A stretch of 64,000 nucleotides of DNA, taken from the NCBI GenBank assembly GCA_964247055.1, contig OZ176057.1, positions 6,200,001 through 6,264,000 of the forward strand. The letters run 5' to 3'. A program made the translations under genes and the position numbers. Below are positions 12,674-59,176 of this stretch, piece after piece. The number at the start of each line of letters is the position of its first letter. The stretch's first letter is position 1. Under the pieces are notes generated by a model that worked only from the letters and a program-made list of their open reading frames with translations, searched no databases and was not told the origin of the DNA. The DNA comes from Paragordius varius. Its lineage: Eukaryota; Animalia; Nematomorpha.

Positions 12674-15086
12674 TCAAATCTCTTCTTTACACAATTGCAT
12701 TTGGAATTTCTAATATTTTTAGTAAAATAATAAAAATGATATGATACCAAAACCATTTCCGAATCGAAATTAATTACAATTACATAAATATAATAAATAA
12801 ATATTGTCGTTTTATTATATACCATCTTTTCAGTTAAAATGCAACTTTTTCAACACTATTTATGTTGTTTTACATGAAAAATGTTTGAAAATATGTTCTT
12901 TTGACTGAAAAATGGTGTATTAAGAATTTATTCATAATCGAAATTCGTCCTCAATAATGTTAACTTCTAACTATTTTATAATTTAAATTATTTTAATATA
13001 TTTTTATGTATTAAACATATTTTTGAAAAAAATAAAATTCAAAATATCTAATTAAATAAATACCATCAATTGACATGCCAAATCTTGCAAGTTAGTTTCA
13101 GCCCTTATCCTTTTTTGTACATCGTAGAGCTAATACGTTAAAAGTTATAGTAAAAATTGGAATATATAGATAAAACGAAATAACTATACAATTTTTATTC
13201 AAAAGGCATCCTCTTATCTATACAGATTAAGGAATTTATATTATAACTCTATTCGCAGTTAGGCTTCAAAAAATCAAGGAATAATAAAGTAACTGGTTAT
13301 CTTTCATTTAGTAAAAAATATGATATCATCAAATATAATGATGATTTTTACTGTAAAAATATTCTTTTTTTAAAAAAATCTAAATGAATTTTTTCACTTC
13401 ATTTATAGTAACTAAGGGGACATAGTTGTGTTCATCCAGTAAAAGTTTTGTCCTTTGACCATTTCTACGGAGTGCGTGAGTTACTTGTTTAGACTCGGCA
13501 CAGATTTCAAGCTCCTCGTAATCAAAATTAAAAGTTTGACTACACTGAAATATATTTATGAATATATAAATATTTAATATAATGGTAAAATTAAAAATAT
13601 ACGGACAAAACGTAAAAATATAAAGGCAATTATTTTTATCTAAAAGACAATCCTAATTTTTTAAACTTTTTTTCTTATATAGGCTATTTAATCCGAACTC
13701 TTAAAGTGTAGAATCAATTGTGTTAGTAATATATGTCTCTATTTCACACTGTGCCATTTTTTTATATAAAAAAACAAGATTCAAAAAGTATGGTTGTCTT
13801 TTAGAAAAAAAATTTGTTTTTATATTTATACGTTTTTCCGTCTTTCAGTTATTACTATATAAATATATATATAAACTGTGGAAAAGAAGATGGTCATTTC
13901 GATCTAACAAAAATTTTTTTTTCATATAGCTTATTACCAGCAAATTCATCCGCAAAAATTATTATTTGTTGACAACCTAGTTTTTGAAATATTGAGAGAA
14001 AAGAAATCGGCCAAAAAGTGAAAAATAAGGATAATTCAAAAAATAATGATAAAATTTGAAATATTATGGTTTAATATCATTTTAGGAGATTTAATATTAA
14101 ACAGCCTAAAATTATATAGTGGGTTTCTATAAAATTTAAGCTCAAAAGATGGCGTTTTCCTTTTATTACACTCAAAAGATATAAAAAAATTTAATGAAAC
14201 TATATTAAAATAATTTTTTTAAATATTTACTACCTAAACTCACTATTAAAATCTTAATTTGATATTTTATTCAGTAAAAAAACTTCTATAATAAATAAAA
14301 CCAAAATATTGTTTTTTATTTTTGCATTTTTTGTCATCTGGTTTATAAGTGTATAAAAAATTTATACTGTTTTATTTTGGATTACATTAGTAGGAATATT
14401 TAGTATATAATTTATGCAAAATAGGATTAAAAAGTAGTGGAATATGAACCATCAATCCTTACGAATTCCTGTAAAAGTCTGTTTTATGACAAACTTATAT
14501 TTGTATTGGGATTTGTTCGAATTTTTTGTTGATATTCCACTAATTTTATATCCAATTTTGCATAAATTATATACTTAAAATTCGTACTCATGTAAGATTC
14601 CAAAATAAAACAGTATAAATTTTTTATACACTCAACCAGATGACAAAAAAATCTAAAATAAAAAACAATATTTTTTGGTTTAATTTTGATATAGAAAAAT
14701 AAATAATGAATGTTTAGATTTTAATAGTTAGTTTAGGTAGTGAATAATTAAACAAATTATTTTAATTTCATTAATTTTTTTGTCATTTGAGTGTGATAAA
14801 AGGAAGAAGCCATCTTTTGAGCTTATATTTTATAGAAACCCTAACTATATGATTTTAGGCTGTTTATATATTGAAAATATCTCCTAAAATGATAATAAAC
14901 CATAATATTTTAAATTTTATCATTATTTGAATAATCCTTAATTATTCTTATTTTTATATTTTTTGGCCTATTTCGCTTTTCTCTCAATTCAAAAACTAGT
15001 TTGTCAACAAATAATAATTTTTGCGGCATATGAATTCGCTGGTCATAAGCTATCTCATTTTTTTTGTTAAATTTTTTTTGCACACA

Positions 15087-15139
<53 letters not shown>

Positions 15140-18100
15140 AAAAATTAGGATAAAATACAGCTAAAGGGTATTTTAACTGTATAAAACAAATGGAATTTTT
15201 TAATTTAGACATATTGGTGAAATAAGTAAAATTTGAATTACACAACAGACAAAACTTAAAAACATAAATACATATATTTTTTTAAAAATGTTGACCGCCG
15301 TACTTTTTATATCATTTCTAACTTTTTTCATAAATTGCAAAGCATGAATAATGAGATTTAAATTAATAACTTTATTTGTAGTTATATATTTTAAAATTGT
15401 AATTATATAATATAAGAATAAATTAATCTTTAAGAAATTTCGGTGGTCTCTCATGAAGAGATTGAGTTCTTACTATTTGACTGTATAATTCGAATTTTGA
15501 ATGTACGTTTTATGTAAGGATTTCATGGGGAAAAATATTATATTTGAGTTTTGTAATTAATTTTTAAGTGTTAATACATTCTATTTTAAGGTGAATACGG
15601 CTTTTATGCTTAAAAGCTAAACGCTTATTTTTACGTGTGGATTCGGATAAATAAAGTGTGGTATAATACTATCAAATTATACTTTATGTTTAAAGCAAAC
15701 CTATTTGTGAATATTAAATTAATCTGTTTAAATGTTTGGATCATTAAAAAATTTGGCCTTGAAATTGATCGATTTTATGCATTAAAACATAAAACTGCAA
15801 ATTTTTTTATTACCCATATTTTTACAAACGAATTCTAAAATGCGTAATTTAATTGACAGAGAGCTTGTTTAATTAGTAAATTTTAACAAATTTACAGAAA
15901 AAGTTTAAATCAAGTTTAGCCGAGTATAATATAAGACAAGGAATAACTAATTAGTTTACGTTTTTTAGACCCAATCTTAAGTTTGAGAACCCAAATGTAC
16001 AAGCGATAAAGCCTTCGGCATCCCCGGCTTTTCTTAAGTTTCCATACAGTGCACAAGTCTATACAATACAAAAGAATAAGATTTATATGCAAATAAACAA
16101 TTAACCCTCACGAAATATTCTAAGTTGTAAAATTTAAACTGTATAATATGATTTACAAAATGGAAGATGGATTTGTTAAATGTTGCAATTCTTTAATAAA
16201 TAGATTTATGTTTTAAAGAGTTTGCAATTACATATTTATAAATATAATTTTACCAAGTTTAAAATTATATCGCTAGGGACACGTTTCGAAGTCCCTTATT
16301 TAAAAAATTATTTTTCATAATAGAAATATAAAATTGATAATTTTCTAAATATTATTAAAAATATATATATATATATATATATAATGCGTCCGAGATGGTT
16401 GACATAAAATTACCTCTATTTTTACAAAATATTAATAAAGTAAAAAAAAATTCAAAAAATAAAATTACATGCCACATATTTCCAACGCATTCCTCGTTCC
16501 CGTGATGGCACTTGAAATTGTATCGATCGGTTGAGTTATCGTAAGTTTCCTTAAAGAGCAAATAATATAAAAAAAGATGTCTAATTTTAGAATGAAATTA
16601 TATACAGAAGACAAAACGTAAGGACAAATTTTTTTTCTAAAAGACAAAAATTGTGAAATATGTAATTGATTATACATCTCTATCTCATGAATTTTAAAGA
16701 ATTATTATATCTAATAAAATACTAAAATATTTTTAAAAAATAATGTATGTCTTTATATTTTTCCGCTTTTTCCGTATTTCAATTTTTACTGTAAAAAAAT
16801 TATTTTTACATTAAATATTAGGTTAAACAAAACCCATATTTGTTTGATTTCTAATTTTGCTTATATAAATTACCTAATTCAATTGTGACAAATGTAATTG
16901 ATAAGTTACCAACATACATCTCTATCTCTGAATTTCATAGAATTATTATATCTAATAAAATTAAAATCTTTTCTAGAAAATAATGTTTGTCTTTATATTT
17001 TTCCGTTTTTTCCGTATTGCCATTTTTACTGTAAAAAAATTATTTTGACATTAATTATTAAGAATAAAAAAATTACTGAAGATTTCCCATAAGGCCAAAA
17101 TCGGAAGGATATGAGTTTGCGTATCTCTTCAGTTTCATTCCTGAGTTTTTGAATAAATGGCCACACCTATAAAAATTTTATTAGTATTAAAGTATTTTAG
17201 CTAAAATTATTCACTAAATTACACTAAAAATTTAAATTTTACGGACAAAATGTAAACATATAAAAAACAAATTTTTTTTAAAAAGACAACCATACTTTTT
17301 ATTATTCTATAAAATACATTTAAATACAATCGTATAACACATAATTGATTGTGTTAGCAATTTACATTTCTATATTATACTTTGTAGTTTATAACAATGA
17401 GTTATATTTAGAAAAATTAAGTTTCAAAGTATGGTTATCTTTTAGAAAAAAATATTTGTCTTAATTTACGTTTTGTCCGTATTATATCAGTTTTTACATT
17501 CGGAATTAGAATACATAGTTAACAGAGTTTAAATATAGAATAATTTTTTGCAAATGGAAACTCTTTGTGTGAAACATGTATTTAGAACAGGGGAATTTTA
17601 AAAATTGGAAATAAAGGATAATATTAAATTATATTTTATAGTTGATATTTAACTTTTTACTGAGTATATAATATCTATTTTTTGATTATTGTATTTAGAT
17701 TGAATTACAATTATATGTTGTTAACATATTAATTATCATATAAAGTGCTTTACAATTTTCAAAATTAAAGTAAACATTATAAAATCATTTTGATTGCCGG
17801 TATAACAAGGGAATATTTGAGTGTGTTCTATCTCTGATCTCTTTTTGCAAAACCCAAAAGAGATTAGGGGAATTAAAATATGTTTATTTGTAAAACTTAT
17901 TACAGTCATGTCTATATAGAATTGTCAGAAATTCGTATTTAAATGATTATAATTTTTTTTTAATTGTTTTGATGTTTGATATGTCAACTTTCAACATGCG
18001 CATTTTTAAGCCTTAAAATAATAGTAGCCTATTTATTGTAAGAATTTTTAATTTATAATTAAAAGATATTGCAAAATATTATTCTTGATGCACAACATGC

Positions 18101-21040
18101 GCATATTGTAATTTTTATCTTTTGTAAAATATTAATTATAAAATTTTATTAATAAAGTTTAAACACACATAACCAAAATATAATTTAAAAGATAAAAATA
18201 TTTATTGATTATAATATTTAAATAAATTTATAATTGTTTTCATTTTCTAGGGGTTTTCTTTGCATACATTCCAACAAAATATGTGAAGAAAAATTATAAT
18301 AATTTTTTAGATTTTTTTCCCTTCTCTCTTCGCAAAGTCTTGCAATTTTATTATGTTGCTCTAGAGGGGTACTACACCGGGGTTTTTTATCATATTGATG
18401 TTTAATCTCATGAAAAAAACATTCAATGGGATTCAGTTGTGGCGAATATGGAGGTAAATAAACTATTTTATTCCTTAGCTCACCTAACACCGCGGCTTTG
18501 TGAATAGGTGCATTATCGCAAACTATTATTGAACTTTCAGGAATTCTTGTTAAACATTCCGTCAAAAAAATTCGAAAATCATCGCCTCTAAAGGCGCCTT
18601 CTTTTGTTCTGTAATTAATAACTCCCTGACAACCAATCATACATATCAATGAAACATTTTTTCCTAAAATAAATTCAAATTTTACCTTTGTTAAATCCCT
18701 CTACAATAGGAGATTTACCCTTTGGAGCTCTACCCCATATATTTTTAAGTTTCAAACTGAAGCCTGACTCATCAATAAAAAAAACTTTTTCCTGTGGAAT
18801 ATCTTTCACCAATCTGGCATAATTATAACGCTTTTCTATATTCTCTGGGGTGTTTCGTTCCCGAGGTTGTAAAATACACCTCTTTCGAGTAATTTCTGAA
18901 TCCGAGAGAATTTTGTAAATAGTTGTTCTGCATACTTTAATATGGTCTGGTATTTGTTTCATTATTTCATCGATTGTTAATTCACAATCATTGTTTATTA
19001 ATCTTTTGACAGCATCTATTATTTCTGGATTTCTGAATTTGTTACGCCGACCAGATTTATTTCTATCAGTAGAATTCCCAAGAATTATTTTTCTTCTTAA
19101 TATATTTATAGATGTTAAGGACATATCAAAATAATCCAAAAAATAATTTGAGGGTTTTTCCAAATTTTTGGGATCAAAAAATAATTTTTTAGCTCTATCT
19201 ATTTTTTCCTTATTCCAAAAATTATGTTCTAAAATTTAAAAATATTAATACTTTTATGTTTTATTTTTTCACGAGATAATTCATTTTCATTCAATGGAAC
19301 ATCCAAATCAGATACTACGAATTGTTATTTTTAAATACTTGAAGACTCTTCACTTGTATCCGATTCAAAAGTATAAACTGAGGGAGCTATGTTTTCCTTT
19401 AATATTGGATTTTGTTCTCAATTTTTATTTTTTAATATAAACCTTCAAGTACACTAGCTGCCGAGCAAAGAAGAAATAATGGGTTATCGTTGATATTCAT
19501 AATTTTTTAAAATAACTCTAGATTTATGATTTATTTCTTTATATATATAGAGATTAAATGGACATCTGCTTGGGTTTTCTTATATATTTTAAGTGCATGT
19601 TAAAAACCCCTAGAAAATGAAAACATATATTAAACTTGGTTATCATAAATTACATGAGCATGTTGTAGATAAAATGTTCAAGAATAATATTTTGCAACAT
19701 CTTTTAATTATAAATTAAAAATTCTTACACTAAATAGGCTATTATTATTTTAAGGCTTAAAAATGCGCATGTTGAAAGTTGACATATCAAACATCAAAAC
19801 AATTAAAAAAAAATTATAATCATTTAAATAAAAATTTCTGACAATTCTATATAGACATGACTGTATAACATCTATAATTTTTATGTTTATCAATCTATAT
19901 TTGTAATTAGTGGTTAAATTGTGAGACATATTTGAATTGAAAATCAATAGATATTCTTTAAATTCTAAAATTAATAATATTGGACAACAGTTTTGTCCTT
20001 TATTAACTTTGGATGTTATACAGTAGCGTATTGAGTAAAACAATATTAGTCCATAGAAGAATAAAAAAATGTTTTTTTACAAAAACAAGCCTACTTGTAT
20101 ATTCACATAACTATAATAATATTCCCTTGTTTTTTTTTAAAAAAAACTTAATTTTATTCTATTATGGGCTAATAATGTTTTATCTGTATAAAATCACATT
20201 TCAATTTCAGTTAAATATCAGCAATATACAATTTAGATTGTTAAATATCCTAGAAATATTTTAAATTTCCCACATTTTAAAGTTCCATAAACGAAATTCG
20301 ATGAAAACAAAACTTTAAAATATTTTTAAAAGACATAATTTTTATTATTTTTCCCATATAATTTATCTTACAAATGTAAAATATATAGAGTAGCGTATGG
20401 CATAAAACATTTTTAGTTAATAAAAGAATAAAAAAATGTTTTTTAAAATAACAACATTCTTTCATTAGGGACTAATTTGTTTTATATCATACGCCACTGC
20501 AAATTAATGTGCTACCAATTTACATTTTTATTTCTACTTTGCAATTTAAAATAATGAGTGCAGATAACAAACAATATTTTAAAAATGTACAATGCTTATT
20601 TAAGTAAAGGTGATGTCTTTATGTATTTTACGTTTTGTCTATGGTATATTTTTAATTTTATAGTCAAAAATATTGCTATATATTCTAATTTATACCTGTG
20701 TCACTATAAGCCTTCTACTGTCCGGACATAGAGATTCATAATAAATGTCTAAAATAATTGGGGTTGTATATTCAATTTTTGCATCAGAGCTACTTTCATC
20801 GGCCTTTACACCAGAAGATTTTAAGGAACTTTCGTTAAATGTTTGCTTTTTCGTTTCAGTTTTAACTGTAAAATTCGTTTTAGCTGGTGTTTTTATCTTG
20901 GTATTATTAATGGTTTCTGATGAAGCAATATTAGATATTCTTTTATGCTGACCTGCGGATATATTTTCTTTGGGGATTAAAGAGTTATTTTGGCCCGCGA
21001 CTAATGTTAAACCAACAAACAAAGTTATCAAAATTATCAT
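12674..21040 (-). CDS. GILT: GILT-like (gamma-interferon-inducible lysosomal thiol reductase) protein (exons 21040-20696, 17166-17077, 16549-16469, 16058-15960, 13544-13398, 13129-13064, 12709-12674)
   Basis: Signal peptide MIILITLFVGLTLVAG, active site YYESLCPDS (CXXS), then PYGK, FKCHHGNEECVGN, and YVPLVTINE. Six phase-0 GT-AG introns give a stop-free ORF. Confidence 0.92.
13580..13857. mobile_element. MITE family C copy in GILT intron 4
   Basis: Both arms recognisable. Confidence 0.8.
13874..15089. mobile_element. ~1.2-kb hairpin (foldback/MITE) element with CACTGTG-type ends next to (TA)n, in GILT intron 4
   Basis: The two arms (~550 bp each) are reverse complements; CACAGTG end followed by a long (TA)n tract. 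Confidence 0.88.
15090..15137. repeat. (TA)n microsatellite; others at ~8585-8610, 16360-16383, 23506-23533 and 62250-62295
   Basis: Read directly. Confidence 0.95.
16600..17030. mobile_element. MITE family C remnant with a tandemly duplicated right half, GILT intron 2
   Basis: tatacatctctatctc..GAATT...GTCTTTATATTTTTCCG..TTTTTACTGTA occurs at ~16670-16790 and ~16915-17030. Confidence 0.7.
17222..17497. mobile_element. MITE family C copy in GILT intron 1
   Basis: Both arms recognisable. Confidence 0.82.
17903..19863 (-). mobile_element. IS630-Tc1-mariner DNA transposon, family A, apparently intact, in GILT intron 1
   Basis: TA duplication (17901-02, 19864-65). Ends are CAGTCATGTCTATATAGAATTGTCAGAAATT and its reverse complement. 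Long imperfect TIRs of ~260-350 bp. Encodes a transposase. Confidence 0.95.
18218..19500 (-). CDS. DD30E IS630/Tc1-like transposase, 395 aa after removing four micro-introns (exons 19500-19443, 19416-19339, 19314-19252, 19228-18686, 18663-18218)
   Basis: Motifs FIDESGF, VCDNAPIH, LPPYSPQLNPIECFF and an HTH-like region (TIDEI...VCRTTIYKIL). Exons of 58+78+63+543+446 = 1188 nt give a stop-free ORF. The introns (26, 24, 23, 22 nt) are all GT-AG and phase 1. Confidence 0.85.
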
Positions 21041-23500: not shown

Positions 23501-23532
<32 letters not shown>

Positions 23533-23534
<2 letters not shown>

Positions 23535-24750
23535 CTGTGAGCAAAAAGAGGGTCATTTTGATTTAACGAAATTTTTTTTAATGTGATAGCTTTTAACGAG
23601 CTAATTTTCCGGCAATTTTTTTTATTTGTTAACAACTTAGTTTTTAAAATATTCAGCGAAAATCAAAATTCAAAAATTAAAGGTTAATTGAGGATAATTC
23701 AAAAAATATTGATAGAGTTTGAGATATTATGGTTTATTATCATGTAAGGATAAATTATCAATATATCAATAGCCTAAAATCAAATAGTTAGGATTTCTAT
23801 AAAATTTGAGCTCAAAAGATGGCTTCTTTTAACACACTATTAAAAATTATTTAAGCACTCTACTTATATTTACTTTTTATTTATTTAATACCTAAACTCA
23901 CTAAAATCTTAACATTCATATTTTTTCAGTATATATCAAAATAAAACCAAAAATATTTTTTTTTAATTTATACATTTTTTTGTCATCCGGTTTATGAATG
24001 TATAAAAAATTTATACTGTTTTATTTTGGAATCTTACATGAGTGGCAATTATTAAGTATACAATTTATGCAAAATAAAATTTAAAAATTGTCGAATATCC
24101 ACCAACAATCCTTACAAATCCCTGTAACAAGTCTGTTTTAAGACAAACTAATATTTTTATTGGGATTCGTACGGATTGTTGATGGATCCACTACTTTTAA
24201 ATCCTATTTTGAATAAATTATATACTTAATAATTCCAACTCATGTAAGATTCCAAAATCAAACAGTATAAATTTTTTATACATTCATAAACCAGATGACA
24301 AAAAATGTAATTAAAAAAAATATTTTGGGTTTTATTTTGATATAGTTTTTTTACTGAATAAAATATGTTAAGATTTTAATAGTGAGTTTAGGTAAATAAT
24401 TGAAAATAATTATTTAAATATAGTTTCATTAAAATATTTTGTCTTTTAAGTGTGTTAAAGAAAAACGCCATTTTTTGAGCTGAAATTTTATAACCCTAAC
24501 TATATAATTTTAGTCTATTTATATATTAAAAATAAAATCCTTAAATGATAATCCTCAAACTTTATTAATATTTTTTGAATTATCCTCAATTAAACTTAAT
24601 TTTCGCTTTATGCACGATTTTTATTTTCTCTTAATATTTCAAAACTAAGTTATTAACAAATAAAAAAATGCGGGAAATGAATTAGCTCGTTATAAGCTAT
24701 CACATAAAAAAAAATTTTCAAATCAAAATGACCCTCTTTTTTGCACAATT
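23533..24750. mobile_element. Second copy of the ~1.2-kb hairpin element
   Basis: Collinear with 13874-15089 and preceded by (TA)n. Confidence 0.88.
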
Positions 24751-24753
24751 ATA

Positions 24754-26348
24754 TATTATTTTTATGCAAAAACATCATTTTTCAACCAAACGCAACATTT
24801 TTTCAAGCAAAGTAATTTAACAAAGAAACATTTTTTTAGACAACATTTTTTGAGCAAAGACAACACATTTTAAACCAAACACAACATTTTATCAACCAAA
24901 TACAACATTTTTTAAACCAGCAACATTTTTTCAAGCAAAGACAACATTTTTTTAATCAAATAGAACATTTTTTCAACCAAATGATACATATTTTTAACCA
25001 AACTTTTTTTCGAGAACATAATTTCTAGCAAAGACAACATTTTTTTAGGCAAACACAACATTCAATCAAAGACAAATTTTTTTTAACAAACGGAACATTT
25101 TTTGAGCAAGACAACATTTTTTCAACCAAACGCAACATTTTATGCAACATTTTTTCAACCATACGCAACATTTTTTCAAGCAGACACAACATTTTTTCAA
25201 GCAGAGAAAACATTTTTTAAGGCAAACGCAACATTTTACAAGCTAAGATAACATTTTTTATAACGCAACTTTTTTCAAGCAAATATAACATTTTTCCATC
25301 CAAACGCAACATTTTTTTAACCAAAGACACCATTTTTCAAGCAAAAACAACAATGTTTTAAAAATTAAAAAAACATTTTTTTTATTTTAAGACGTATATT
25401 TTGAGTTAATGTAGTTTAATTTTAGCGTAGAATTATGATTTATTGTTTTATCATCAATATTTAATGGTAGCTTAAAATACTTTAATTTTTTGCATCATTA
25501 TACCATTTGCACTTCAAGAGCGTCTTTGAGCACTTCAAGTTGGTCCTTTAATATTTCAAATTGGTCCTTAAACACTTTAAATTGGTCTAACTTTTATTAA
25601 TTAAGCAAAAAATATTCATCTAACCTATCATTTTATACCTTTTTTCCTTATTTAACCTAAACTTATAGGTGAATACCAATTTTTTCATAAGAACCATATA
25701 TCCTTATTATTTTCTATAAAAAAATTAACTATATTATAATCTAGGCACTGTGGGTTATTGATCGTAATATTTAGTTTAAAACATTGATAAGTTTATAATA
25801 TTGATAAAGAAAGAAAATTATTGAAACAAATAAAGTTGTTTTTACCATGAAAATATTTTTGGCACAAAAAATAATAAAAAAAGGTATAGTTTAAAACGGT
25901 TGTATGCAAACTGCAAAATAAGAATTTTAAGTTAAGGATAACTTTAAATTTTCATAGACACTTCGAAGCACATATAGATTGAATAGGTGAAAATAAGTTA
26001 TAAATAATAAACGTAAACAAATAATGCAATTTATGGCCAAATTATTGTTTTAATTTATCATTAAATATTGATGATAAAACAATAAAATCATCATTTTACG
26101 TTAAAAAATTACATTAACTTTAAATTAAATATGTCATAAAATAAAAAAAATGGTTTTTAATTTTTCTAAAATTTGCTTTAAACAATGGTGTCTTTGGTTG
26201 AAAAATGTTGCGTTTGTTTGATATGTTGTGCTTGCTTGAAAATGTTGCGTTTGTTAAAAATGTTTGCTTAATATGTTGTCTTTGCTTAGTTGTGTTTGGA
26301 AAAAATGTTGCAGGTTGAAAAAATGATGTTTTTGCATGAAAAATGGTA
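24754..26348. mobile_element. Foldback-like element family T3 (AAATGGTA end) with arms of ~21-bp CAACCAAACGCAACATTTTTT repeats; contains a T2 left-end fragment at 25501-25590
   Basis: The left arm 24754-25490 is the reverse complement of the right arm 26040-26348, and its minisatellite is expanded to ~600 bp. Confidence 0.8.
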
Positions 26349-30861: not shown

Positions 30862-32113
30862 CTACTTGAGACCCATGATAGCAAGATTAGAAAATAATAG
30901 TTTGCTCTGTTCATGCAGTCTGTTTGAGTTGTTTTGCGGCCTTCGGGATTTGTATGCAAGTGATATTTTGCGTGCGGAGAGGTAATACCGTATACAATTT
31001 TTTGGATTATGGTTTATACGATAATAATAATAACGGTAATGGAACAGGATGGAACTGGATGGAACTGGAACGTCACGTACATGGCAAGATTCTATGATGA
31101 AAGTTTAGATTACCCAGCCGATTTAAGCGATAGAATGATTATAGCTGAGCTAGGGACCTATATTACGACACAGCGGACAAGAGTTGAAAAATTGAGTTTG
31201 GCGGCTAGCAGTGCTTATGGGTCGGCCATCGATTTGAATAAACTGCAACAAGCCCTGTATGAGCCGACATACGAATCTCTCATACAATGGGACCAAGAAT
31301 ATTATCCAAATGATGAAGCTTTTATACTAGGCTCTCAAACAGGTAATATACCATTTACAGTTCAAATTCACCCTTAAACAATTCAAATTCACCCTTGAAC
31401 AATTCAAATTCACCCTTGAACAATTCAAATTCACCCTAAAAATAAATTATGTGTTTTTGAACTAATATAACTCATTATTAATATGAAATATGTTTATGGT
31501 ATAGTTTATTTTTTCAGTAATATTTTAATTTAAAACAAAATTTTTTATTTTTTAAAAATATTTAAAATATAGGTAATTTTTAATCTCAAAAAACATATAT
31601 TTTATTTGAGGGTGAATTTGAATTGTTCGAGGGTGAAATTGAATTGTTCAAGGGTGAATTTGAATTGTTTAAGGGTGAAATTGAATTGTAAATGGTATAT
31701 CCTTTCAACTTTCTTATCGAAAAAAGCGCAATATGTTAAACAAAGTTTCCTCGAAACGAGCAACGGAGGACATATTCTCAAACAAATGCCGTCAAATACA
31801 TGAACCAACCAAATACTTCAAACGTTAATCAAGAAAGGAGGACAGAGGTGGAAACGCATAATGTGCTTGTTATGTGGCTTATTTTTGGGTACAATTATAT
31901 TCGCCAAGATCGTTTATCGGAAATCGAGATGTCAAAAACCTTAACACAACTTTTGTACCCAATCATTTTCACGTGTGCAATAATTCTTATTACCAGCATA
32001 TTTTTATGGTTTATATATCACACGACGTATATGAATCTGTACGTAAAACTAATAAACCCATAATGGATTCAGATGTTCCTGTTGATGAGGATAAATTGAT
32101 TAAAAAGAGATAA
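30862..32113 (+). pseudogene. Second copy of the membrane-protein relic, with two internal deletions and a MITE insertion
   Basis: Collinear with 44045-45733. About 745 bp are missing after GCGGCCTTCGG and ~65 bp after TGCGTGCG. Interrupted at 31349-31697. Confidence 0.75.
31349..31697. mobile_element. MITE family T1 (TACCATTTAC ends, 21-bp subterminal repeats)
   Basis: TIR TACCATTTACA...TGTAAATGGTA with tandem CCCTTGAACAATTCAAATTCA units on both arms. The empty site in the paralogue at ~45325 shows a TA (or ATAT) duplication. Confidence 0.92.
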
Positions 32114-35100
32114 ATGGTGTTTGTGGTTAAAAAACAAATGGTTTGCTGATGAATACTTTTATCTATAGAATCCAATGAGAACCTTTTACCGTGGCATAAG
32201 AGGAATCTCAAAATGCTCTATTTAATCGTACTACTCATAAGGTCCAGATTTTGGGTTAAATACATTTGTAATTATCAACAAAATAAAGTTCCACTATATT
32301 TGACATCGCATCCGATTAACTCTTTTTTAATTAAAAATAGAATATAGATTTAGCTTAAGCGAAAAAATTTATTTAAAAATGTGCGAATGATATAGATTAC
32401 GACAAAAGTGTGTACAACTAAATCACTCGTGAACGATCAAAACAAAAGCACTGTGATTTTGATACATTATCAGAATATATAAATATCATCACACTGTTGT
32501 TTTAAAGGAAAGTATGTCAAGACATTTATCATACTATCTAGTCATATCACCCAAATACTAATATGGCTATTTAATGTGCAAATATATTGAAAAAAAAATT
32601 CACAAAACTTTCTAGCCATAAGTATAAAAATTGGTTTTAACATTTTTCTTCGGAAAAAATCAATATAAAGAAATCAGATAAATCTTCGAATGTTTAATCT
32701 TAACTTCCATTTGTTTTAAAAAATGATGTCCATGGCAAACATCCGTTTAAATAATTTTAAAAATATAATTCAAAAACGCATGTCATTAGTTTGATATATA
32801 TATTTAGCGTTCTATATAACTTTCTATTTCACATTTTTATAAAATGACATAAAGACTACAACATCATTTATATATTAATAGAATGTTTATATTAGCTGTA
32901 TTCTAAATAATTTCTTCGATTGTTACATTTTCATATATTAACACAAAGGCTACATCTAAATTACAATAATGTTATATTTGCTGTTAATACCCTTATGCGA
33001 TTTTTTGGAACCACGACCCTATGCTAAACTGGAAATACATGAAAATTTGGATAGAAGTTAACGGATTGACAAAAATTAACTCACAATGACGGAATTAACA
33101 GAAAGCGTATTTTTGGATGTGGATTCTTAGGGAGAATTATAGAAAGATCTATTTTTTAATTAATTACACCTAATCAAACACAACTAACTTTAATGAACTG
33201 GCTAAAAACATTAGCAATCTTAACGCGGAAGTTATTAGCATTCAAGCAATAAACCATACAATTAAACTAGTCAGGTTACTACTAAAAATAGTAAAATTTA
33301 ATAATTTACAGACTTTAATTTAAATAAAAATGCGTTTGTTTATTAATGACTTATTAGCCCACGCAAGAATTGTATTTTGTAATAAAAAGCAAGATTTGAC
33401 CTTAATTTTCTATTTTTTCCAAGTTATAAAAAAGTATTTTATGTAGTTAGATGTTAACAAATAAATTAAATTTGACAAGTTTACAAGTTGCAAAAATAAT
33501 GACATCTGAACTACAAAACAATACAACACATCAATCATTCTATAAAATTAAAACATGATTTGGAATCTTAAAACATTATCCAACTATAGTCTATAAAAGT
33601 TCATCGTAAAGTGTACTGGCTATAGAATTACTCACTTAATTTTAATTGGATCAGCATCTTATTTAAAATAATGATTAATGGAACCATGTACTGGGTGGTT
33701 GAAATATTTATACGAATTTATTATTATAAAAATTGAATACAAAATGTAAAAAATTAAAATACAAAAAAGACAAACTTTCAATTGATTTTTTATATATATT
33801 TACATTTGAGATATATTGAGTGTGTTACCAGTTATTTAATTGTTTCAAATCAAGTATTATAGAATTAATTTGCCAGAACTTTTGAATATAAGAGGTAGCT
33901 TTAACCAAGGCCTATAATCATACCAAAAAAGAGTGATGAAACCAGGAGGGTCTATCTATAATTATTTTTTGTCTTTTGGGAAAGAACGCTGCATTGCGTC
34001 TATAAAATTAACGTTTCAATAAATAAATCTTTCCAACATTAAATTATTTAGAATTTGTTTTTAGCGATGATCTCAATCCTCATTTTGCCGTAATAATTTA
34101 ATAAGATTCTAGTCCATACTAAAATGGCAGCATAATTTGTAATTGTAGGAAATCAAAGCACTTGTCTGATAATTCTAATTTTTTCCGTTAGACAGATATT
34201 TTAACGTTTCTAAAATTAAAATATAATATATTACATTTAAAATGGTATAATTTTTGTAAGGTTATCATCTATGATTTAAACTGAAATTTATTAGTAAGCA
34301 GGTGTACGAAACATTGTTCTAAATTTTCTAACCTAAATTTCCATTATGTTAATAAAAAGTCGAAATACAATAAATTATCTTTAAATTATTAATAACTTAG
34401 AAACTTAATCATTTGCCAATATGAATATGCAATCTAGTTTTTGAAGATTTAAGATTGTTGAGAAAATACTTTTTTAATTACTACAGTTTGACTTTGAGTA
34501 AAAAATTATATTTGGCAAATAACTGATTAGTGCTTTTAAATTAGCTTAGTGAAAATATTTATAACGGCTCTAAAGTACACATCTTGTGCTTTTATATTTT
34601 TTTGAAATATAATATTTTAGAAAATTGTAAAGATGAAAAAAGCAATAACATTCTCCATCATCTTTAGGAATTCCTTATTAATAATTTTTTCTTATAGTAA
34701 ACCTTAACATTTACCCTTGTTTTCGGAAAACACCGATAAAACATAAAAATATAACACCGAATTCTTTATTTCAATTTTAAATTTTATTTATATATTAAAA
34801 GAATTTTCACAGGGTTATTTCACTTCAAGTTGTCCATATCTATCCTATTAATTTATTTGGCACCGACTCATTGATTTCTGTGTTTTTCTCCCCTTAATAT
34901 TCTTTAGAAATAAGTAATCAAAAATTGAAATTATACGGATTAAAAAATACTAAGATTTATCCTAAATTAACTAAGTAATTACAATTAGTGTATCAATTAC
35001 ATTTTCAAAATTTCGAAACGCTAAGAGATAAATTATTATAAATAATAAAATTTATAAAATATGATTGTCTTTCTAAATAAATATTTAACGTTTTGTATTT

Positions 35101-35829
35101 TTAATGTATTTTTAGACAATTACTCTGTCTTTCATTTTTTTTATTTCAAATTAAACCGTCTCAGGCAGTCAAACAAAAGGCAATAAATTATTTTTAGCAT
35201 ATATCAAAATTTATTAAGCGTATTTTGTCATTGATAATACAGGGAAAATTATGATCTAAAAAACTATACTGGTTTTAAATTTTCCCCAAGTCTCAAAGTC
35301 CCAACATTGTGTAAAAAGTGCGCACTTTATGTGCATGAAAAACCTATTCGTCCTTTGAAACTTTATGTGCGCCCCGCCATAAATTTGGACATTCATATTT
35401 CACAAAAACAAACTCACACAAAGTCTTATTAATCACAATATTTCTTAAATTTTTTAAATTGATCAATTAATTAGCAGGGACTAGAAAAATTGTTATATTG
35501 CGTTTACACTTTTCAGTCTTTTGTTTGAGATCTAATAAACTTAATATAAATGCCCATATATATTTCGAATCCTGCCCGCTAGTCATTTTCAGCCAAAAGT
35601 GCAGCCCGCGAAACCATTTTTGTTGGACAGCCCTATTCTATTAATTTGTTTGTTTTATGCACTAAAAGGCCTCTAATACATTTACAACAATACTCCTTAA
35701 CTTGAATGGATGCGTTAAAATGAGTAAATTTATTTCAATAAAAATTTATTTTTGAGTGTAAAGATTAAAAAAAATAAACTTATCGGTCCGTCTATCAATT
35801 AATCAATAACATTATACCAAACACACTTT

Positions 35830-44044: not shown

Positions 44045-45733
44045 TAGATCACTGAGACCCATGATAGTAAGATTAGAAAATAATGGTTTTCTCTGTTCAT
44101 GCAGTCTGTTTGAGTTACTTTGCGGCCTTCGGAATCAAATTGTGAATGTAATCCTGGCAGCCAAAGCAAGTATAATCAATCACGATATTATGAGAGTGAA
44201 TTACCCCTGGTAACATGTAATGCCTACAATAACGTGGAAAAAAGTTTGAGTTGTGTAACACCACTGCTGAGTCTTTATGGTTATTCCAGTTACAATTGTT
44301 ACTTTTACATAGAAAATTTGAAGAGTAAGCGTTGATTTCTATTATGAGACGGACTGTTTTTAAATTTATTAAACAGCAGAACCTACCGATTATATGATTG
44401 AACCAGAAATTATGATTATGTTGGGTTTTATTGTGAAAATTCTTATTTTTTATATTAAAAAATGATAATTTTGATTGATTCCGATTAAATTTTTTTTTTG
44501 TAAATCTTTGGCCCTGAATTGATACTAAACTCCAAAATTTCAGAGTTAACAGCCAAAAACCAAAATTACTTCTAAATAAGAGTATGATGACGTTTGGTAT
44601 AAAGAAAAGCACAATTATATATTGACCAGTTTATCAAATAAGTTATCCCGACAATTATTAATATTTTTTACAATCTACATAAACCAATGTGCCAAGCGTA
44701 CCCTTAGGTAACATCACATATTGGTTTCCCACTTGTGGTCCAGAAAAAGAGACCAGTAAAGGCCGAGCAAAAACTAATATTTGTAATCAGCAAAGTGGGA
44801 AAAAAAATTCAACCAATGCCCGCGCCAAAACTATTTGAGATGTCCGCTGGAGAAGACATGGGTATGCATTTAGACTTGTATGCAAATGATATTTTGCGTG
44901 CGCTCGAAAAAAGTATCGACCAATATGTCACCACGCATCGGAATGTTTATAAGATTGAAAAAGATGTGAGAGGTAATACCGTATACAATTTTTTGAATTA
45001 TGGTTTATACGATAATAATAACAGCAATGGAACCGGATGGAACTGGAATTCCATCACTTATATAGCAAGATTCTATGATGAAAGTTTAGATTACCCAGCC
45101 GATTTAAGCGATAGAATGATTATAGCTGAGCTAGGGACCTATATTACGACACAGCGGACAAGAGTTGAAAAATTGAGTTTGGCGGCTAGCAGTGCCTACG
45201 GGTCGGCCATCGATCTGAATAAACTGCAACAAGCCCTGTCTGAGCCGACATACGAATCTCTCATACAATGGGACCAAGAAAATTATCTAAATGATGAAGC
45301 TTTTGTACTAGGCTCGCAAACAGGGGATATCCTTTCAACTTTCTTATCGAAAAAGGCGCAATATGTTAAACAAAGTCCCCTCGAAACGAGCAACGGAGGA
45401 CAAATGAATTCTCAAACAAATGCCGCCCAAAACGTGGCTAATCAACCAAATACTTCCAATGTTAATCAAGAAAGGAGAACAGAGATGGAAACGCATAACG
45501 TCCTTGGTATGTGGCTTATTTTTGGATATAATTATATTCGGCAAGATTGCTTATCGGAAATCGAAATGTCTCAAATAACCTTACCACAACTTTTGTAACC
45601 GATCATTTTCACATGTGCAGTTATTCTTATTACCAGCATATTTTTATGGTTTATATATCACACGACGTATATGAATCTGTACGTAAAACTAAATCAACCC
45701 ATAATGGATTCAGATGTTCCTGTTAATGAGAAT
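44045..45733 (+). pseudogene. Relic intronless ORF for a type-I membrane (glyco)protein-like product, long copy
   Basis: Cys-rich start (NCECNPG, LVTC...LSCVTP), a 287-codon open stretch (44735-45598), then a hydrophobic C-terminal segment and short acidic tail (...IFLWFIYHTT..RKT..PIMDSDVPV.E.KLIKKR*). Several stops and frameshifts upstream. Confidence 0.6.
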
Positions 45734-50360: not shown

Positions 50361-53189
50361 TGACGTATGTTAGATTATCCTAAAATATATTTGTTGAAAA
50401 TTATTATTTTGAAATATTTTTGTCACAGAGCGTTAATTAACACATAACCTTTTCGTTCTGTAGATATTTAAAAATTTGAGTCGCTTTATACTCCAGATTT
50501 TAACTTATAAATAAACTACTGTTTTAAAGGTTGTTTTGGTTATATGATTATCAAACATTATTCTCGATTTATAAAAAAACTTTATTAAAAGTGTTTTTAC
50601 GAAATTAGGATGGCTCCGAAACTTGATTGTAACTGATTGTTTCAATATCAAATACGCCATTAAAATGTTTCTGGAGGCTTTTAAAATTATTTTTTGCATT
50701 TTTAACCATTATACATAACTACGGTACACAAAATGATCAGTTTTAAACTGGTGGGGTTGAATATAGGAAAATATGTGGTTCAATCAGGGACGCATTTATA
50801 TAAATAAAATATTTCAAATTTAAAATATGGACTAGATCTCGTACGGGAAAATTGCTCTAAAGTCAATTTTGTAAAAAGGGGCTAAATTGAGAGGTTAGCC
50901 TAAGATTTAAAAAGATTATTGCACTGACAGCCTACCCATCTTTCAAAATATATTTAAGCCATAAATTGTCTAAATAAACAATTTTTAAATGCGCAGGGCA
51001 AAACTGACGGCCTTATTTGAAAGAGGGCTTAGTCACGCTCGGCGCAATTGTGAAGCATTATATAAAATTATTATTGAAATTGTTTCGGGAACGTGCTTCT
51101 AAACTAATATTTGATAAAAAAAACATTTTTATAAGGATGGGGCTAGACTCGGCAAATTCATTTTCGGTGCATTTGTAAATAATAATGAAAAACACCACGT
51201 TTAAATATGCATGGGCCTCACGCTATCCAAAAATTTTCAACCAACCTCAAAATTTTAAATCTTCTATATTCATGCTAAGTAGGGCTCAATTGGGGGCCTC
51301 CTTTTACAAAGGGTTTAGTCACCCTCGACGCCATTTTAAAACATTAAAAAAATTCTTTATTTAAACTGACTATGTTCAAAAAAATTGTTTCACGGGAGGG
51401 CCTGAAATGAGGAGCAAATTGAAAAATAGCTTAGTCATTGTCGGCATTATTGAAAAACAATGAAAGTACACTATCGAATTTGGATGGTCCTACACGCTTT
51501 CCAAAAAATTGCTTCAACGTCAAATTGTCTTAAGGCCCGTATTTTTACACTATGTGGGGCTAAATTGAATGGCTAATTTAAAAAAGGGCTTTAGTTTCGG
51601 CGCAAGAAAATAATTTGAAAAATGTTTTATTACAACTGAGTGGACCTATAAGTTTTGTTAATCTCGTGTCAAAACCAACAATTCTTTCAAAACCCCATTT
51701 TCATATAAGTGAGGGGCTAAACAGAGGGGCTAATTTTTTAAAAGGGCTTAGTCACCCTCAGTGCCTTTGCGAAACATTATTGGACACTGTGTTATTAGAA
51801 GAAATGAATTTAAAGCAAGCATTTATCCATTTAGTAATTTAAATGTAATAAGATGGCTATTTACTGTACAAACATATTAGAGGAAGCGTCGATTCTGGAC
51901 ATAATAGTATTTATAAAAATTTGGTTTAAATTTTATTGACATTTTCCCGCGGTTTAAATAAAAAAATATCTTAAATCAAAAAATTTATAATTTATTATGA
52001 TAATTTTCCTCTCGTTTTTAACAAAATGATGTCTATAGCAAACACCCCTTTAGATAAAATTCTATTATAACTCCAAAAACGCATGTCAATAGGTTGGTAT
52101 ATACATAAGGTGACCAGATTTTTTGAAGGAAAAAGCGGGACAAATCTGAGAAGGGAGTGGGTCATTGGGGGGTACAACCAAAAATTTTTATACAAAAAAT
52201 TTATTGTAATATTTATTTATTTTTAACAAAATACATTATAAATATAAAAAAAATTGTACCTCACAGGTTGTTTGTACCTTATTCAATAAATTTCCATGTG
52301 CACGAACAAAGGGTGAAGTTATTTTAATATTCTAGAAAAAAATAATAAAGACAAAATTATCACAAAGTGCCCTGGGTGATGCAAGAAGCGGCACAAAAAT
52401 ATTTTTAACAATTTAGCGAATAATCTTAATCAAAACATTATTGGCAGATACACAACGTTCAAACAGCTACTCATTTGTTACCCCTGGATGTGGAAAATAT
52501 AGATGTTAAAATGCTTGAATATTGTAGAACTGTTGGTTAGCTCTTCTGCCAGCGATTGATATATTTATAAAAATATGATCTCCTAGAATATCACAGGACA
52601 AAGGTCAAAATTCCAAGTCAAAAAAGATTAGAAAATAATTTTATACCATTACCTAATCGCAATATTATAAAGCATCCAGAAAACAAGGCTCAATGAATAG
52701 CCATAATATAAAAATGTTTTATACAAACAGAAAAGATTATTTGGAAGACAAGACGGGGCACAATGACAATTTTTTATGAAGTCTCATTTTTAAATAAATA
52801 TATTGAATGAAAACTTTTATTATGGACAACAGAAAATATACGTAGGATAGAAATGGTTAAAATAATCATTTTTAAACAAATTATGTTCCATACAATAATA
52901 TTTTAATTAAAGAATTTGCCTTATCTTTACCTGAACCACTGCTATCGAACGCGTTTTTTCACAGTAAATAAGTAAGGACACGGAATCAAATTTAAATGTT
53001 TAATAAAAGCCATTTTATGTGTTCGAATATAATTTGACAAATTATGAAGTATACAATATTTTGAGTAATTTTGTTTATTTTTTTACATAAAAACTTTATA
53101 AATATAAGAAAATATTTTATTCTTTGGTATATTTTTTGTTTGAGTGAATGCGTTTTAGCAGATTGTCATCATTTATTAAAATATTGTAG

Positions 53190-54968
53190 AAGTCTTCACA
53201 AGTATTTGTCAAATTATATTTGACAGATAAAACGGCCTTAAAGTTTCAACATTTAAATTTGATTTTTCCGATGGCCACACCTGATTTACTGTGGAAAAAA
53301 CGCGATCAGTAGCAGCGTTGGTTCCAGGTAAATATAATGCGAATTCCACAATTTTTAAAATATTATTGTTTGTAATATAGTTGGCTTCAAAATGATAAAA
53401 TATTTCCAACCATTTCTTTTTTACTGTATATTTTCTTTTGTCCATAATTTAAGTTTTTTATTATTAATATATCTTTTAACTTATGATACTTCAGAAAAAA
53501 GATCATTTTCTGAAAGATTACCTTTTGATAAATTTTGGGAGCAGATATAATCAAATCATTTTTGAACATCGCACCAATTAAATTCTGATTTTAATGTTAT
53601 CCAATGAAAATGATCAATTTCAATGAATTGGGTCGTCCAGTCTTCCAAATAATCTTTACAGTTTGTATAAAACATTTTTATATAGTACAGGATATCTTGG
53701 CGATTTATTAAGCCTTGTTTTTCTAAATTATTTATTATATTGCGGATGTTAATAGTATAAAATTATTTTCTAACCGTTCTTGACATTGGAATTTTAGGTT
53801 ACTAACTTCATTGGCTACTTCGATTGCCGAAATTTTGTCACCTTCTATAAATTTAATAACATTTTGAAAGAGAGAAGCTTGATTATGTAAGCATTCTAAC
53901 CATATTTTTGAACAATCACTTTCAAAAAACTTTTTTAAAGTTGTATGACATTTGTCCTATGGTAATAAAAAAGATTTTAAAGGATCATAATTTTTAAAAT
54001 TCTTTCGATAGCTGGCATAAAAGCTAACCAACGAGTTTTACAATATCCAAGCATTTTTTGATATTAAACTTCTGCATTTTCACAGAATTCTTTAAGCGAT
54101 TCCTACTGTGTATATTAAAAAATAGGAATATATTTTAACAACTACATTTTCCACATCTAGGGGTAACAAATCAGTAGCTGTTTGAATAGCGTTGTGTAAA
54201 TGCGTTGCACACCCAACGCCAATAATGTTTTGACTAAGATTATCTGTTAATTTATGAAAAATATTTTTTTGTTCCTCTCCTTGCTTTTCCACCAAAGTTC
54301 ATATTGGTGTTGTCAGCGCAATATACGATAATTTTGTATTTTAAATTATTTTTTTGCATTATTGAAGTAAATATTATTTCGGAATTTTCACCGGGTAGGG
54401 AAATTAAATCTAAAATTTTAATTTTTACTCCGGTTTCTGAATCAAAATATCTCATCAAAGTGGGAAATAATTTTGTTTCATGGTGATTTGATGCATCAGA
54501 GTATAGCGATATGGAATTAATTTTCAGCAAATCTTTTTGTATTTCAGAAAATATATGTGGCGAAAGGACATTGCACACAATGGCTTCAGCCTTTGTACGG
54601 GCACATGTAAATTTTTTATGGAATAACGTGCGAATAACTTGTGAGGTACAGTCCATAGATCTAAAGGAATTATTGTGATTAACGGCGTGAAAAGATAACA
54701 CGCACTCAGCTAGTGCCAAATTCTTTTTTTCCTCTCCAAAAGCGGTTTTTCGAAAAAAATCGCTCATTTTGTAAGATGATGCCGCCATATCTAAACATTT
54801 TTTATGTTTCTGTGTTTCCATATGCTTTGTAATATCATGCTTGCCGCCATGTGCCAGGGTGAATTCCCCCTCGCATATAAGACATTTAACAGATGTTCAT
54901 TCTTCGTTTTTTTGATAAAAGGAAAATCTTTCATTAATTCATCGTTGAATTTACAACCTCTTTTTGTG
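53190..54968 (-). pseudogene. hAT transposase pseudogene (frameshifted)
   Basis: Zinc-finger remnant C..C...HGGKHDITKH..T.KH, LYSDASNH, CADNTNMNFGG, GCATH (CxxH), and the C-terminal dimerisation motif LPGTNAATDRVFS, spread over several frames. Confidence 0.88.
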
Positions 54969-56407: not shown

Positions 56408-59176
56408 CAGTCATGTAGACTTTATATTGTTAAAGATTTACTTTTTCGTTAATTGGGTATTAATATTTGGTAAAGAATATAAAAACAAGAGCAATATGGT
56501 ATTACCATATCACATTCTTTAAAAAAATTAAAAGAAGTGTGGGGGAAGGGCGTCAGAAATCTTTGGTAAAAAATGAAAATCTTTAATATTGAGGGGAATG
56601 GTAATATTTTTGTTAATTTTTTGCAAAATTTTATATATTAATTTTTTTGATAAAATTTTTATTTAACACCTAGATTCGAATGGGGTATTTAAATATACCT
56701 TAGACTAAATTTGAGTTAGGATTTTTTAATAACTAGTGAAAGAAACGGTCCCAATTTAAATTTATGCTTCTTTTCTAATAAAAATTATATATAAATATGC
56801 CAAAATATTATAAAATTTTGTTTTGAAAAAAAAGTTCCATGTCAAACAACTTCGACGCCATTTTTATTTTACAAAATGTTTGCAAAATGTCGTGTTCATT
56901 TAGTGTTAAGGGTAAAATTAAAGATAATTTTTTATTTAAATCACATCTAACCTTGATAGAAATAGAAAAAGCGATTTATTTTGTATTCTTTTTCAATTTT
57001 ACCATTGCACACATGTCACATTAAATTTTTACCTTTTGTTTTAGCTTAAAAATGAATGTGTTGTATCCAAGTGTTAAACAAAACTAACTTAAATATAGAT
57101 TTTATTAAAAAAATATTTATTATAATTTTTTTAATAGGATATCACAATAATCAAACAAACATACAACGGATAAATAATGAATTGTGTGTATATATAAGGG
57201 AAAACATAGGAAATGAATATGGATTATATAGCGTTTATAAAAAAATATTATCGAACTGAATGCGTTTCATCCTAAAATGCTCTATTTTGGGAAATTTAAA
57301 ATTCAATCATATATATACCAGTTTACCACTATTTAACCCTATTGAATGTTTTTTTCTATAATAATTGTTATAAAAAAAGCAAGATATATCTGGAAATTAT
57401 TTTTATATCGTACTGTGCGATCAAAAAAAAAATAAATCGTCTCTGATACTTACAATAAATGATGTTTAAAATTGTTTTCATTTTTCAACCTTAGTTTTTT
57501 TAAAGCAACATCAATTAAAACTCTTTTTGAAAAATCATAATAATTTTGAAGAGATTTTGTTTTTCTTTCGTCGCACAATCTTTTGATTCTGCAATATTGT
57601 TCCCCGAATGTAGTCCATCTTGGTTTTTTTTTATAATAAAATTTTAATTCGTGAAAAAAACATTCAATAGGATTGAGTTAGGGGCGATTAAGGTGGTAAA
57701 TATATAAGCTTGTTCCTTAAATTACCCAAAATAGAACATTTATGTATGGGTGCGTTGTCGCAAATGACAAACGCATCTTGTGGTAACATGGCCAAAGACT
57801 CCTCCAAAAATGGCTTAAAATTCTCGCCATTGAACGCTCCCTGTTTGATGCTGTAATTAACAACACCCTGTATTCCAATCATACACAACAAAGAGACGTT
57901 TTTACCTAAAATAAAATAAAGATATACCTTTATTGAAGCCCTTTACGATAGGTGCCTGTCCTGACGGTGCCCGGCCAAATATATTTTTTGCTATCAAGGA
58001 AAACCCCAACTCATCTAAATAATAGATTTCGTCCAAGGGTATACCGTTCACAAGACAGGCATACTCAAATCGTTTTTGAATTACCAACGAGGAATTGCGC
58101 TGTTGAGGTTCCATAATACACCTTTTGCGCGTGTATTTAAATATTTTATATAAGGTTTTTTTGGATATTTTGGATTCTGTGGGTAATTTTATTGAGAATC
58201 TCATCGACAGTCAATTCACAATCACTATCGAGGATTGTTTTGACCTGCCCGACTAGACCTTCATTGCATTTCGTTTTCCTACCCTTTTTCAATGGCTCTT
58301 TCTCTCTATTCCCAGAGTCATGCTTCGTCTCATAGCATTTATGGAACTTATAGACATGTCTAAATCATCTACAAAATGACGATACGATAATTCGTGATTT
58401 CTGGGATTCCCGAAAATTTTATAGGCCTTAGACTTTTTTTCATCTAACCAAAAATTATATTCTAAAATTAACAAAAACGGTTTTCCTTTTTCCTCTACCG
58501 TTTAATGAAGTTGTCATATTTTCATTCCCGATCTCATTAACACCTAAATTCTAAATGAAAAAAAAAACCATCGTTGCCAGGGACAAAATTTTGTATGGGT
58601 CTTATATTTTCGTCAACATAATCTGAATCTAACATTATAAAGGCAAAAAAAACCATCAAGGACACCAGGACAAGTGTCTACTATCAATTCATTCCCGCCA
58701 ATCTCATTAACACCTAAATTCTAAATGAAAAAAAAACCATCGTTGCCAGGAACAAAATTTTGTGTGGGTCTTATATTTTCGTCTACATAATCTGAATCTA
58801 ACATTATAAAGGAAAAAAATACCCGCAATACCAGGGTTACATCCTAACGAAATTGGATCAAATTGATTTAATATAGCATCTATCGTAAAAATCCCTTTTA
58901 TCGTTCCCATATCAAAACAAAAAAAAATTATAATTGAGATAAAAATTACGATTTTCCTAATTCTTTTATACAATAATTTTAAGTGAAGGGTTAGTAGTTG
59001 GTGTATTTTCATTTTTTACCAAAGATTTCCGACGCCTTTCCACTTCATTTTTTACTTTATTAAAGAATATGATATGGTAATACCATATTGCTCTTGTTTT
59101 TATATTCTTTACCAAATATTAATACCCAATTAACGAAAAGAGGTAAATCTTTAACAATATAAAGTCTACATGAATG
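56408..59176 (-). mobile_element. IS630-Tc1-mariner DNA transposon, family B, degenerate, inserted into a tandem-array unit
   Basis: ~170-bp TIRs starting CAGTCATGTAGACTTTATATTGTTAAAGATTTAC. TA duplication, confirmed against the empty site in a sister unit (atcgtaaaaTAtagtggtttt near 47250). Confidence 0.92.
57450..58880 (-). pseudogene. Family B transposase pseudogene with micro-introns and several frameshifts
   Basis: YLDELGF, ICDNAPIH, LPP..., NPIECFF remnants. Frameshifts near 58310, 58175 and 57680, plus an in-frame stop after LPP. 22-nt intron at 57906-57927. Confidence 0.88.

Follow-up and report, generated by a model that had tools for sequence, protein, structure and literature searches.

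A putative 22-nt spliceosomal intron common to two diverged families of DD30E transposons

The locus raises the question of whether a short segment that breaks the reading frame of a transposase gene is removed by splicing and, if so, how it came to lie at the same codon in two families of transposons. The segment of family B occupies positions 57927-57906 on the minus strand of the window (the whole 64,000-nt stretch of DNA analysed here). Its sequence is GTATATCTTTATTTTATTTTAG (22 nt, 86% AT), flanked by AAA G on one side and GT AAA on the other, and it falls after the first catalytic Asp codon and before K-N-V-S. Read without it, the gene encodes GFNK-G-KNVSLLCMIG, with the Gly codon split after its first base. 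Family A contains a 22-nt segment at 18685-18664 (minus strand), with flanks AAA G and GA AAA, whose omission gives GFNK-G-KNVSLICMIG. Both segments run from GT to AG and interrupt the same codon in phase 1, confirming the agreement in position, phase and length described in an earlier note on this DNA. As argued below, the segment is very probably a genuine U2-type spliceosomal micro-intron of a DD30E transposase, gained on the stem lineage of A and B and kept by selection.

The family A element (17903..19863, minus strand) is bounded by terminal inverted repeats (TIRs) of about 188 nt (97% identity) and a TA duplication. It has an open frame of 395 codons in five exons (19500-18218), separated by predicted phase-1 GT..AG introns of 26, 24, 23 and 22 nt; the third (19229..19251) immediately precedes the codons for H-N-F-W and the fourth is the segment in question. 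The family B element (56408..59176, minus strand), likewise flanked by a TA duplication, has TIRs that measure about 173 nt (90%). The element is lodged in one of the units of a local repeat, three others of which have an empty site at about 47260, 40640 and 33610. Its N-terminal micro-exons (58481..58910, minus strand, with the ATG at 58910) are separated by four phase-1 GT..AG segments of 24-25 nt. They are followed, still on the minus strand, by the remnant of an intron matching A's intron 3 (58462..58480, before Y-N-F-W), by an exon encoding the DNA-binding region and the first catalytic Asp (57928..58461, with two frameshifts), and, beyond the 22-nt segment (57906..57927), by a last exon encoding the DDE_3 part with the second Asp and the Glu (57440..57905, with a stop and a frameshift near 57680-57690). 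With three frameshifts and one stop, the copy of B in the window is a pseudogene.

The DDE_3 profile (PF13358) matched the last exon of A with E=2.7e-17 and a piece of B with E=3e-6, and the D, D, E triad residues are present in both. A match to HTH_Tnp_Tc3_2 (E=0.0037) fell below the curated cut-off; the region aligns with homologues across the whole exon. The spacing from the second Asp to the Glu is 30 residues in A, in B and in their Gordionus relatives (DD30E); it is 34 in 107 of 135 homologues and 30 in 18 of them. Fourteen metagenomic or Logan transposases, including P0205, P0207, P0208, P0215, P0221, P0228 and P0230, are also DD30E, a class not mentioned in the literature searched. By their DDE_3 triad, TIRs and TA duplication, A and B are assigned to the IS630-Tc1-mariner (ITm) transposons. 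The first nine bases are the only part of the TIRs common to the two families; apart from these tips neither TIRs nor UTRs can be aligned, while the 22-nt segment is exact in length.

A tblastn search within the window found one transposase copy per family plus an inverted fragment inside B. Part of the catalytic exon of B recurs in the 3' region of the element as a decayed copy in inverted orientation (73%; 57275-57378 versus 57626-57741). The N-terminal part of B (58910-58481, minus strand) consists of micro-exons of about 60 nt and putative phase-1 introns of 24-25 nt and includes a 169-nt tandem duplication; the copy number of the module varies among contigs. Homology between exons 1-3 of A and the micro-exons of B was not significant (P 0.05-0.2 for matched pairs; one off-diagonal pair gave P=0.008 among 15 tests), so that only two introns are claimed as common to A and B.

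On either side of element A are exons of a GILT-like host gene (21040-20695 and about 16560-16470, minus strand), which encode a signal peptide, Y-E-S-L-C-P-D-S and then C-H-H-G-N-E-E-C; the visible introns of this gene are kilobases long. An exon with a signal peptide and, by eye, a Reeler-like start at 27850-27560 (minus strand) had no Pfam match. From 32650 to 64000 the window is occupied by a degenerate tandem array of at least six partial copies of a unit of some 3.7 kb, at 72-89% identity. Every copy contains an internal inverted repeat of 460 nt, and units are broken up by B and by a unique insert of 2 kb (33740-35720). An orphan ORF of 296 codons (44708-45595, plus strand), with a 92% identical partial copy at 30964-31374 (plus strand), had no match in Pfam or the Atlas. 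A 214-codon ORF (54896-54255, minus strand) within inverted repeats at about 52255-54650 begins with a zinc-finger-like C..C..H..H pattern and looks by eye like a transposase fragment, with no Pfam match. The window also contains a near-palindromic foldback element of 1.25 kb in two copies (77%; 13856-15107 and 23518-24765) and many 300-nt palindromic MITE-like repeats. An Rfam search of the window and an Atlas search with a 287-aa ORF gave no match, and no micro-intron of a host gene was found in the window.

Database searches were run exon by exon, and short pieces were joined locally for splice-site scoring and for ORF chaining. Blind chaining of ORFs over the whole window, with a filter for AT-rich introns, recovered the four introns of A and the 22-nt intron of B. 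Removal of the 22 nt restores a frame colinear with intron-less homologues through the motif N-K/R-G-x-N-V/I-S, with Lys or Arg at position -2 in 101 of 112 homologues, and yields the best or joint-best score against a homologue HMM (74.1 and 75.5 bits; the unspliced sequences reach 25.1 and 19.3). If the segment is retained, a stop is met inside the intron in A and right after it in B, so that the protein ends shortly beyond its first catalytic Asp; because 22 is of the form 3n+1, an unspliced copy would yield a truncated protein.

Enumeration of every frame-restoring GT/GC..AG deletion brought out one competitor, a 19-nt GT..AG unit directly upstream of the segment in both families (57928..57946 in B and 18686..18704 in A, minus strand). 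Were this the true intron, the 22 nt would be coding, for V-K-F-E-F-I-L or V-Y-L-Y-F-I-L, and the 19-nt unit would cease to encode V-K-G-F-N-K (B) or V-E-G-F-N-K (A) plus the first base of the Gly codon. Excision of the 19 nt also restores the frame, scores equally well on the HMM (75.0 and 74.5 bits), yields the usual 31-residue spacing between the first Asp and K-N-V-S, and would account for the identical 3' half of the two 22-mers as F-I-L codons. However, the 19-nt unit differs between A and B by three synonymous and one non-synonymous codon changes, as coding sequence does, whereas the 22-nt unit read as codons shows no synonymous and three non-synonymous changes; this pattern designates the 22-nt unit as the intron. 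Moreover, the 19-nt splice would place Leu at position -2, where homologues carry Lys or Arg, and the unit is 63% AT, as against 76-91% for the other micro-introns. Finally, a variant that removes the AG of the 19-nt unit while leaving the 22-nt intron intact makes up 133.6 of the 161.7 depth at 57928 in run X3. We regard the 19-nt reading as highly improbable. The 19-nt coding unit could act as a cryptic alternative intron.

How far A and B have diverged was assessed with an exon-by-exon codon alignment of 317 codon pairs (52% amino-acid identity; positional identities 63, 76 and 48%). Four-fold sites are identical in 12 of 46 cases (26%) versus the 27% expected from composition, and synonymous sites are thus saturated. 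With pN at 0.29 and pS at 0.72 for the exons on the two sides of the segment, both flanking exons were under purifying selection. Position, phase, length, GT and AG of the segment have been kept through this saturation. Since four-fold sites are at the composition baseline, retention of the four splice bases by chance is unlikely: neutrality predicts it at about 0.5% (0.27^4), or 5% if the third-position identity is used, and GT..AG 22-mers amount to 0.19% of all 22-mers on the minus strand of the window. The equality of length weighs little, as all nine micro-introns in the two elements measure 22-26 nt; they are all GT..AG and 76-91% AT.

The interior of the segment, which the earlier note had described as diverged, turned out not to be strongly so. 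The two segments share 17 of 22 bases, and 13 of the 18 interior bases are identical, compared with a mean of 8.8 in shuffled sequences (P=0.016) and with a lower identity at four-fold sites (Fisher P=0.001). The 3' half is T-rich (7-8 T in 10), includes shared A residues and has 9 of 10 bases common to A and B, whereas non-orthologous micro-introns share 3-7. The interior is thus under constraint, mainly in its T-rich 3' half. Selection for splicing in an old lineage, as the note had proposed, is supported by the saturated synonymous sites, by purifying selection and by the occurrence of the segment in other copies of B; the argument from a diverged interior holds only in part, since the interior is more conserved than neutral sites.

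These comparisons bear on two readings that dispense with splicing. The segment might have entered long ago as a disabling insertion and been passed on to two families that are now dead, its GT and AG being accidental; the window copy of B is indeed a pseudogene and no transcript was found. Against this stand the low pN beside a saturated pS in both flanking exons, the open frame and 97% identical TIRs of A, the empty sites of B with the many related contigs lacking the window copy's lesions, and the exact length of the segment between elements whose TIRs and UTRs, tips apart, no longer align. Alternatively, transcriptional slippage or a +1 shift of the ribosome, mechanisms known from some members of the IS630 family, could restore the frame and give a protein with seven extra residues. 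A length of 3n+1, the A and T runs in the region and the single-base slips that reopen the frame at 27 positions in A and 42 in B would all suit such a mechanism, but the survival of GT and AG through saturation would not. Neither would the lack of conservation among the extra residues, in a stretch that measures 30-32 residues in 121 homologues, and the other interruptions of the gene (23, 24 and 26 nt) are beyond the reach of a single +1 mechanism. Both the dead insertion and the frameshift must be judged extremely improbable.

Additional copies of B were sought in contigs of four runs, aligned to the B coding region of 1,551 letters at 80% likeness. Summed depth in run X1 was 27-100 times the single-contig depth, a ratio that is not a copy number and that points to B being present in tens of copies. 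In the same run, 98% of the depth lacked the stop at 57688 and 92% the frameshift at 58187, while the frameshifts at 58301 and 57680 were missing from 50% and 36%; the lesions of the window copy are, therefore, mostly private to it. The 22-nt segment itself is present in contigs of all four runs. The earlier note had supposed that, were its reading wrong, most members of the family would lack the intron or have lost its GT or AG while keeping an open frame; what was found is that six of the contigs listed cross the site with gaps totalling fewer than 22 letters, that no joint skips the intron, and that no change of GT or AG occurs among the variants listed. A further 235 substitutions and 74 indels lie beyond the listing, and rare copies free of the intron may exist. 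The variants listed at the focal intron affect interior base 57909, which differs in most other copies of B, and the last exon base, 57928, changing Gly to Ser, a residue found at this position in 29 of 112 homologues. In X1 the depth is lower within the intron (2826) than on its flanks (about 5900-6500), which counts against the proposed reading.

The contigs also clarified the upstream junction, where the earlier note had matched the acceptors before H/Y-N-F-W at 19229 (A) and 58462 (B). The correspondence holds, and the window copy of B is found to lack 3 nt of the donor. The three bases missing at 58480 are present in contigs of the four runs, accounting for 28% of the depth in X1 and 58-100% in the others. 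Once they are restored, a 22-nt GT..AG intron in phase 1 appears where A has its 23-nt intron 3, so that at least two introns are common to A and B. The sequence of element A was found in runs under seven organism labels, none on record as RNA; the occurrence of one sequence under several labels would fit a parasite sequenced together with different hosts.

The nearest named proteins are from Gordionus, a horsehair worm, and Photinus, a firefly. The last exon of A as query retrieved Gordionus matches and P0158 as query its own paralogues; a protein homologue search with the long exon of A, limited by a length window, gave no match. Five Gordionus DD30E proteins (P0158, P0162, P0163, P0164 and P0286) and the Photinus one are encoded by single ORFs, gene length equalling protein length. 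All of them are uninterrupted across K-G-K-N-V-S, P0162 and P0286 also across the upstream intron site, and every deeper homologue is uninterrupted at the focal site. From the first Asp to K-N-V-S there are 31 residues in 117 of 121 homologues and 30 in three (range 30-32); spliced A and B have 30, which tells somewhat against removal of the 22 nt, the deficit of one residue lying 4-6 codons upstream of the site, as it also does in P0158. The 30-residue spacing was considered as a character shared with Gordionus and discarded, P0158 alone having 30 and P0162, P0163, P0164 and P0286 having 31.

Trees inferred for each exon separately, from sets lacking Tc1 and Gambol references, group A with B as a clade (100/99) that has a long stem, about 1.2 changes per site. 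A sister grouping with the Gordionus elements received 53/57 in one exon tree and was neither recovered nor rejected in the other (p-AU 0.27); a quick exon-5 tree gave the Gordionus clade as sister with a support of 81. This sister relation being weak, the choice between gain and loss rests on the uninterrupted homologues. From these, the focal intron was probably gained on the long stem of A and B, at an AAG|G proto-splice site. It could instead be older and have been lost in the Gordionus DD30E elements, which share the DD30E spacing and may be the sister group, or it could have been gained in parallel in A and B, AAG|G proto-splice sites being known to favour parallel intron gain (PMC3443670). 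But with all deeper homologues uninterrupted, a loss would demand the same gain and an extra loss, while parallel gain would have to occur at two sites and produce 17 identical bases out of 22; we hold either course to be very unlikely.

As to the source of the gained intron, tandem duplication followed by the loss of one codon is possible, if rather doubtful. The hints are the match between 22 nt and the ancestral distance from Val to Gly, and the presence of a GT..AG unit directly upstream; tests of sequence similarity were not significant (P 0.13-0.39). In Gordionus host genes, introns of 39-44 nt, several ending in AAG, were noted by eye near the 5' ends at L001 7112-7435 and L003 5498-5842; six such GT..AG segments were measured, also by eye. 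An AAG acceptor had been taken as unfavourable, a view dropped because Gordionus introns often end in AAG.

The preferred reading, a spliced micro-intron gained on the A+B stem, would entail the following history. An intron-less ancestor acquired the 22-nt intron at the AAG|G site; A and B, still mobile and within a single host lineage, then diverged until their synonymous sites were saturated. In a cut-and-paste element with no RNA intermediate, a gained intron would simply be inherited. Loss of the GT or the AG, or departure from the size and sequence window of the host, would leave a truncated protein lacking both the second Asp and the Glu, and copies with a spliceable intron alone would continue to make transposase and stay autonomous. 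Since only such copies would make transposase, position, phase, ends, length and the T-rich 3' half would be kept; the length would probably be held by the micro-intron window of the host, whose spliceosome would carry out the removal. Retention of an intron of the P element makes a repressor. By analogy, retention of the last micro-intron might here give a DNA-binding, catalytically dead regulator, and the need for 22-nt splicing might act as a host lock by blocking horizontal transfer. We consider this proposal unlikely; if the host lock were true, the lineage would be trapped in one host and diversify vertically.

That intron positions can be common to transposase families is already known as a general phenomenon. 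TLEWI, Tc1-like elements with spliceosomal introns from bivalves (bioRxiv 10.1101/656579), are ITm transposases in 3-6 exons conserved across diverged elements, the last two exons being the most stable. They differ in being DD36E, low-copy, mostly without TIRs or TSDs, domesticated-looking and 2-11 kb long, whereas A and B are DD30E and multi-copy, have TIRs and TA duplications, and carry introns of 22-26 nt; A and B thus lie outside the TLEWI definition, and with 30 rather than 34 residues they likewise fall outside DD34E (Tc1, Gambol). [quoted passage not shown] Losses from an ancestor with four exons predominate in CACTA, whereas the evidence from A and B points to gain from an intron-less one. 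The C. elegans Tc1 element has one short intron. Minos consists of two exons and a 60-bp intron (PMC2874221). These are Tc1/mariner elements whose transposase needs splicing, as is proposed for A and B, and both are active; each has one longer intron, as opposed to the four or more micro-introns of A and B. The best-scoring named relatives, the transposases of Gordionus sp. m RMFG-2023, are DD30E with the motif K-G-K-N/K-V/L-S, and the P0162 element has TIRs of about 160 nt starting with CAGT after the TA; they differ in being single intron-less ORFs, in a host whose short introns, as measured, are of 39-44 nt and not 22-26.

Introns of about 22 nt have been validated in myxobolids, and introns below 30 nt reported in Dicyema; among 51 animal genomes surveyed in 2026, these two groups were the only ones to show such introns (PMC13644364). 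The introns of A and B resemble them in size (about 22-27 nt), in a donor reduced to GTa and in the A residues before AG, and differ in belonging to a transposon of a possibly nematomorph host and being known from DNA sequence, whereas those of myxobolids and Dicyema, which are cnidarian and dicyemid parasites, are in host genes and have RNA support. The literature searched offered no example of a mobile DD30E lineage that has kept micro-introns through saturation. That two mobile lineages at synonymous saturation both keep a frameshifting segment with exact splice ends strongly supports splicing and, short of RNA, is about the strongest kind of evidence for 22-nt splicing in this animal. It constitutes strong indirect evidence that the host splices introns close to the lower size limit known among animals, which would represent a third origin of such introns if the host is neither a myxobolid nor Dicyema. 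The two families would also supply cases of polarised intron gain in a mobile ITm element, as well as a compact substrate for assays of minimal-intron splicing, and they carry a warning that ORF-based annotation calls such families dead.
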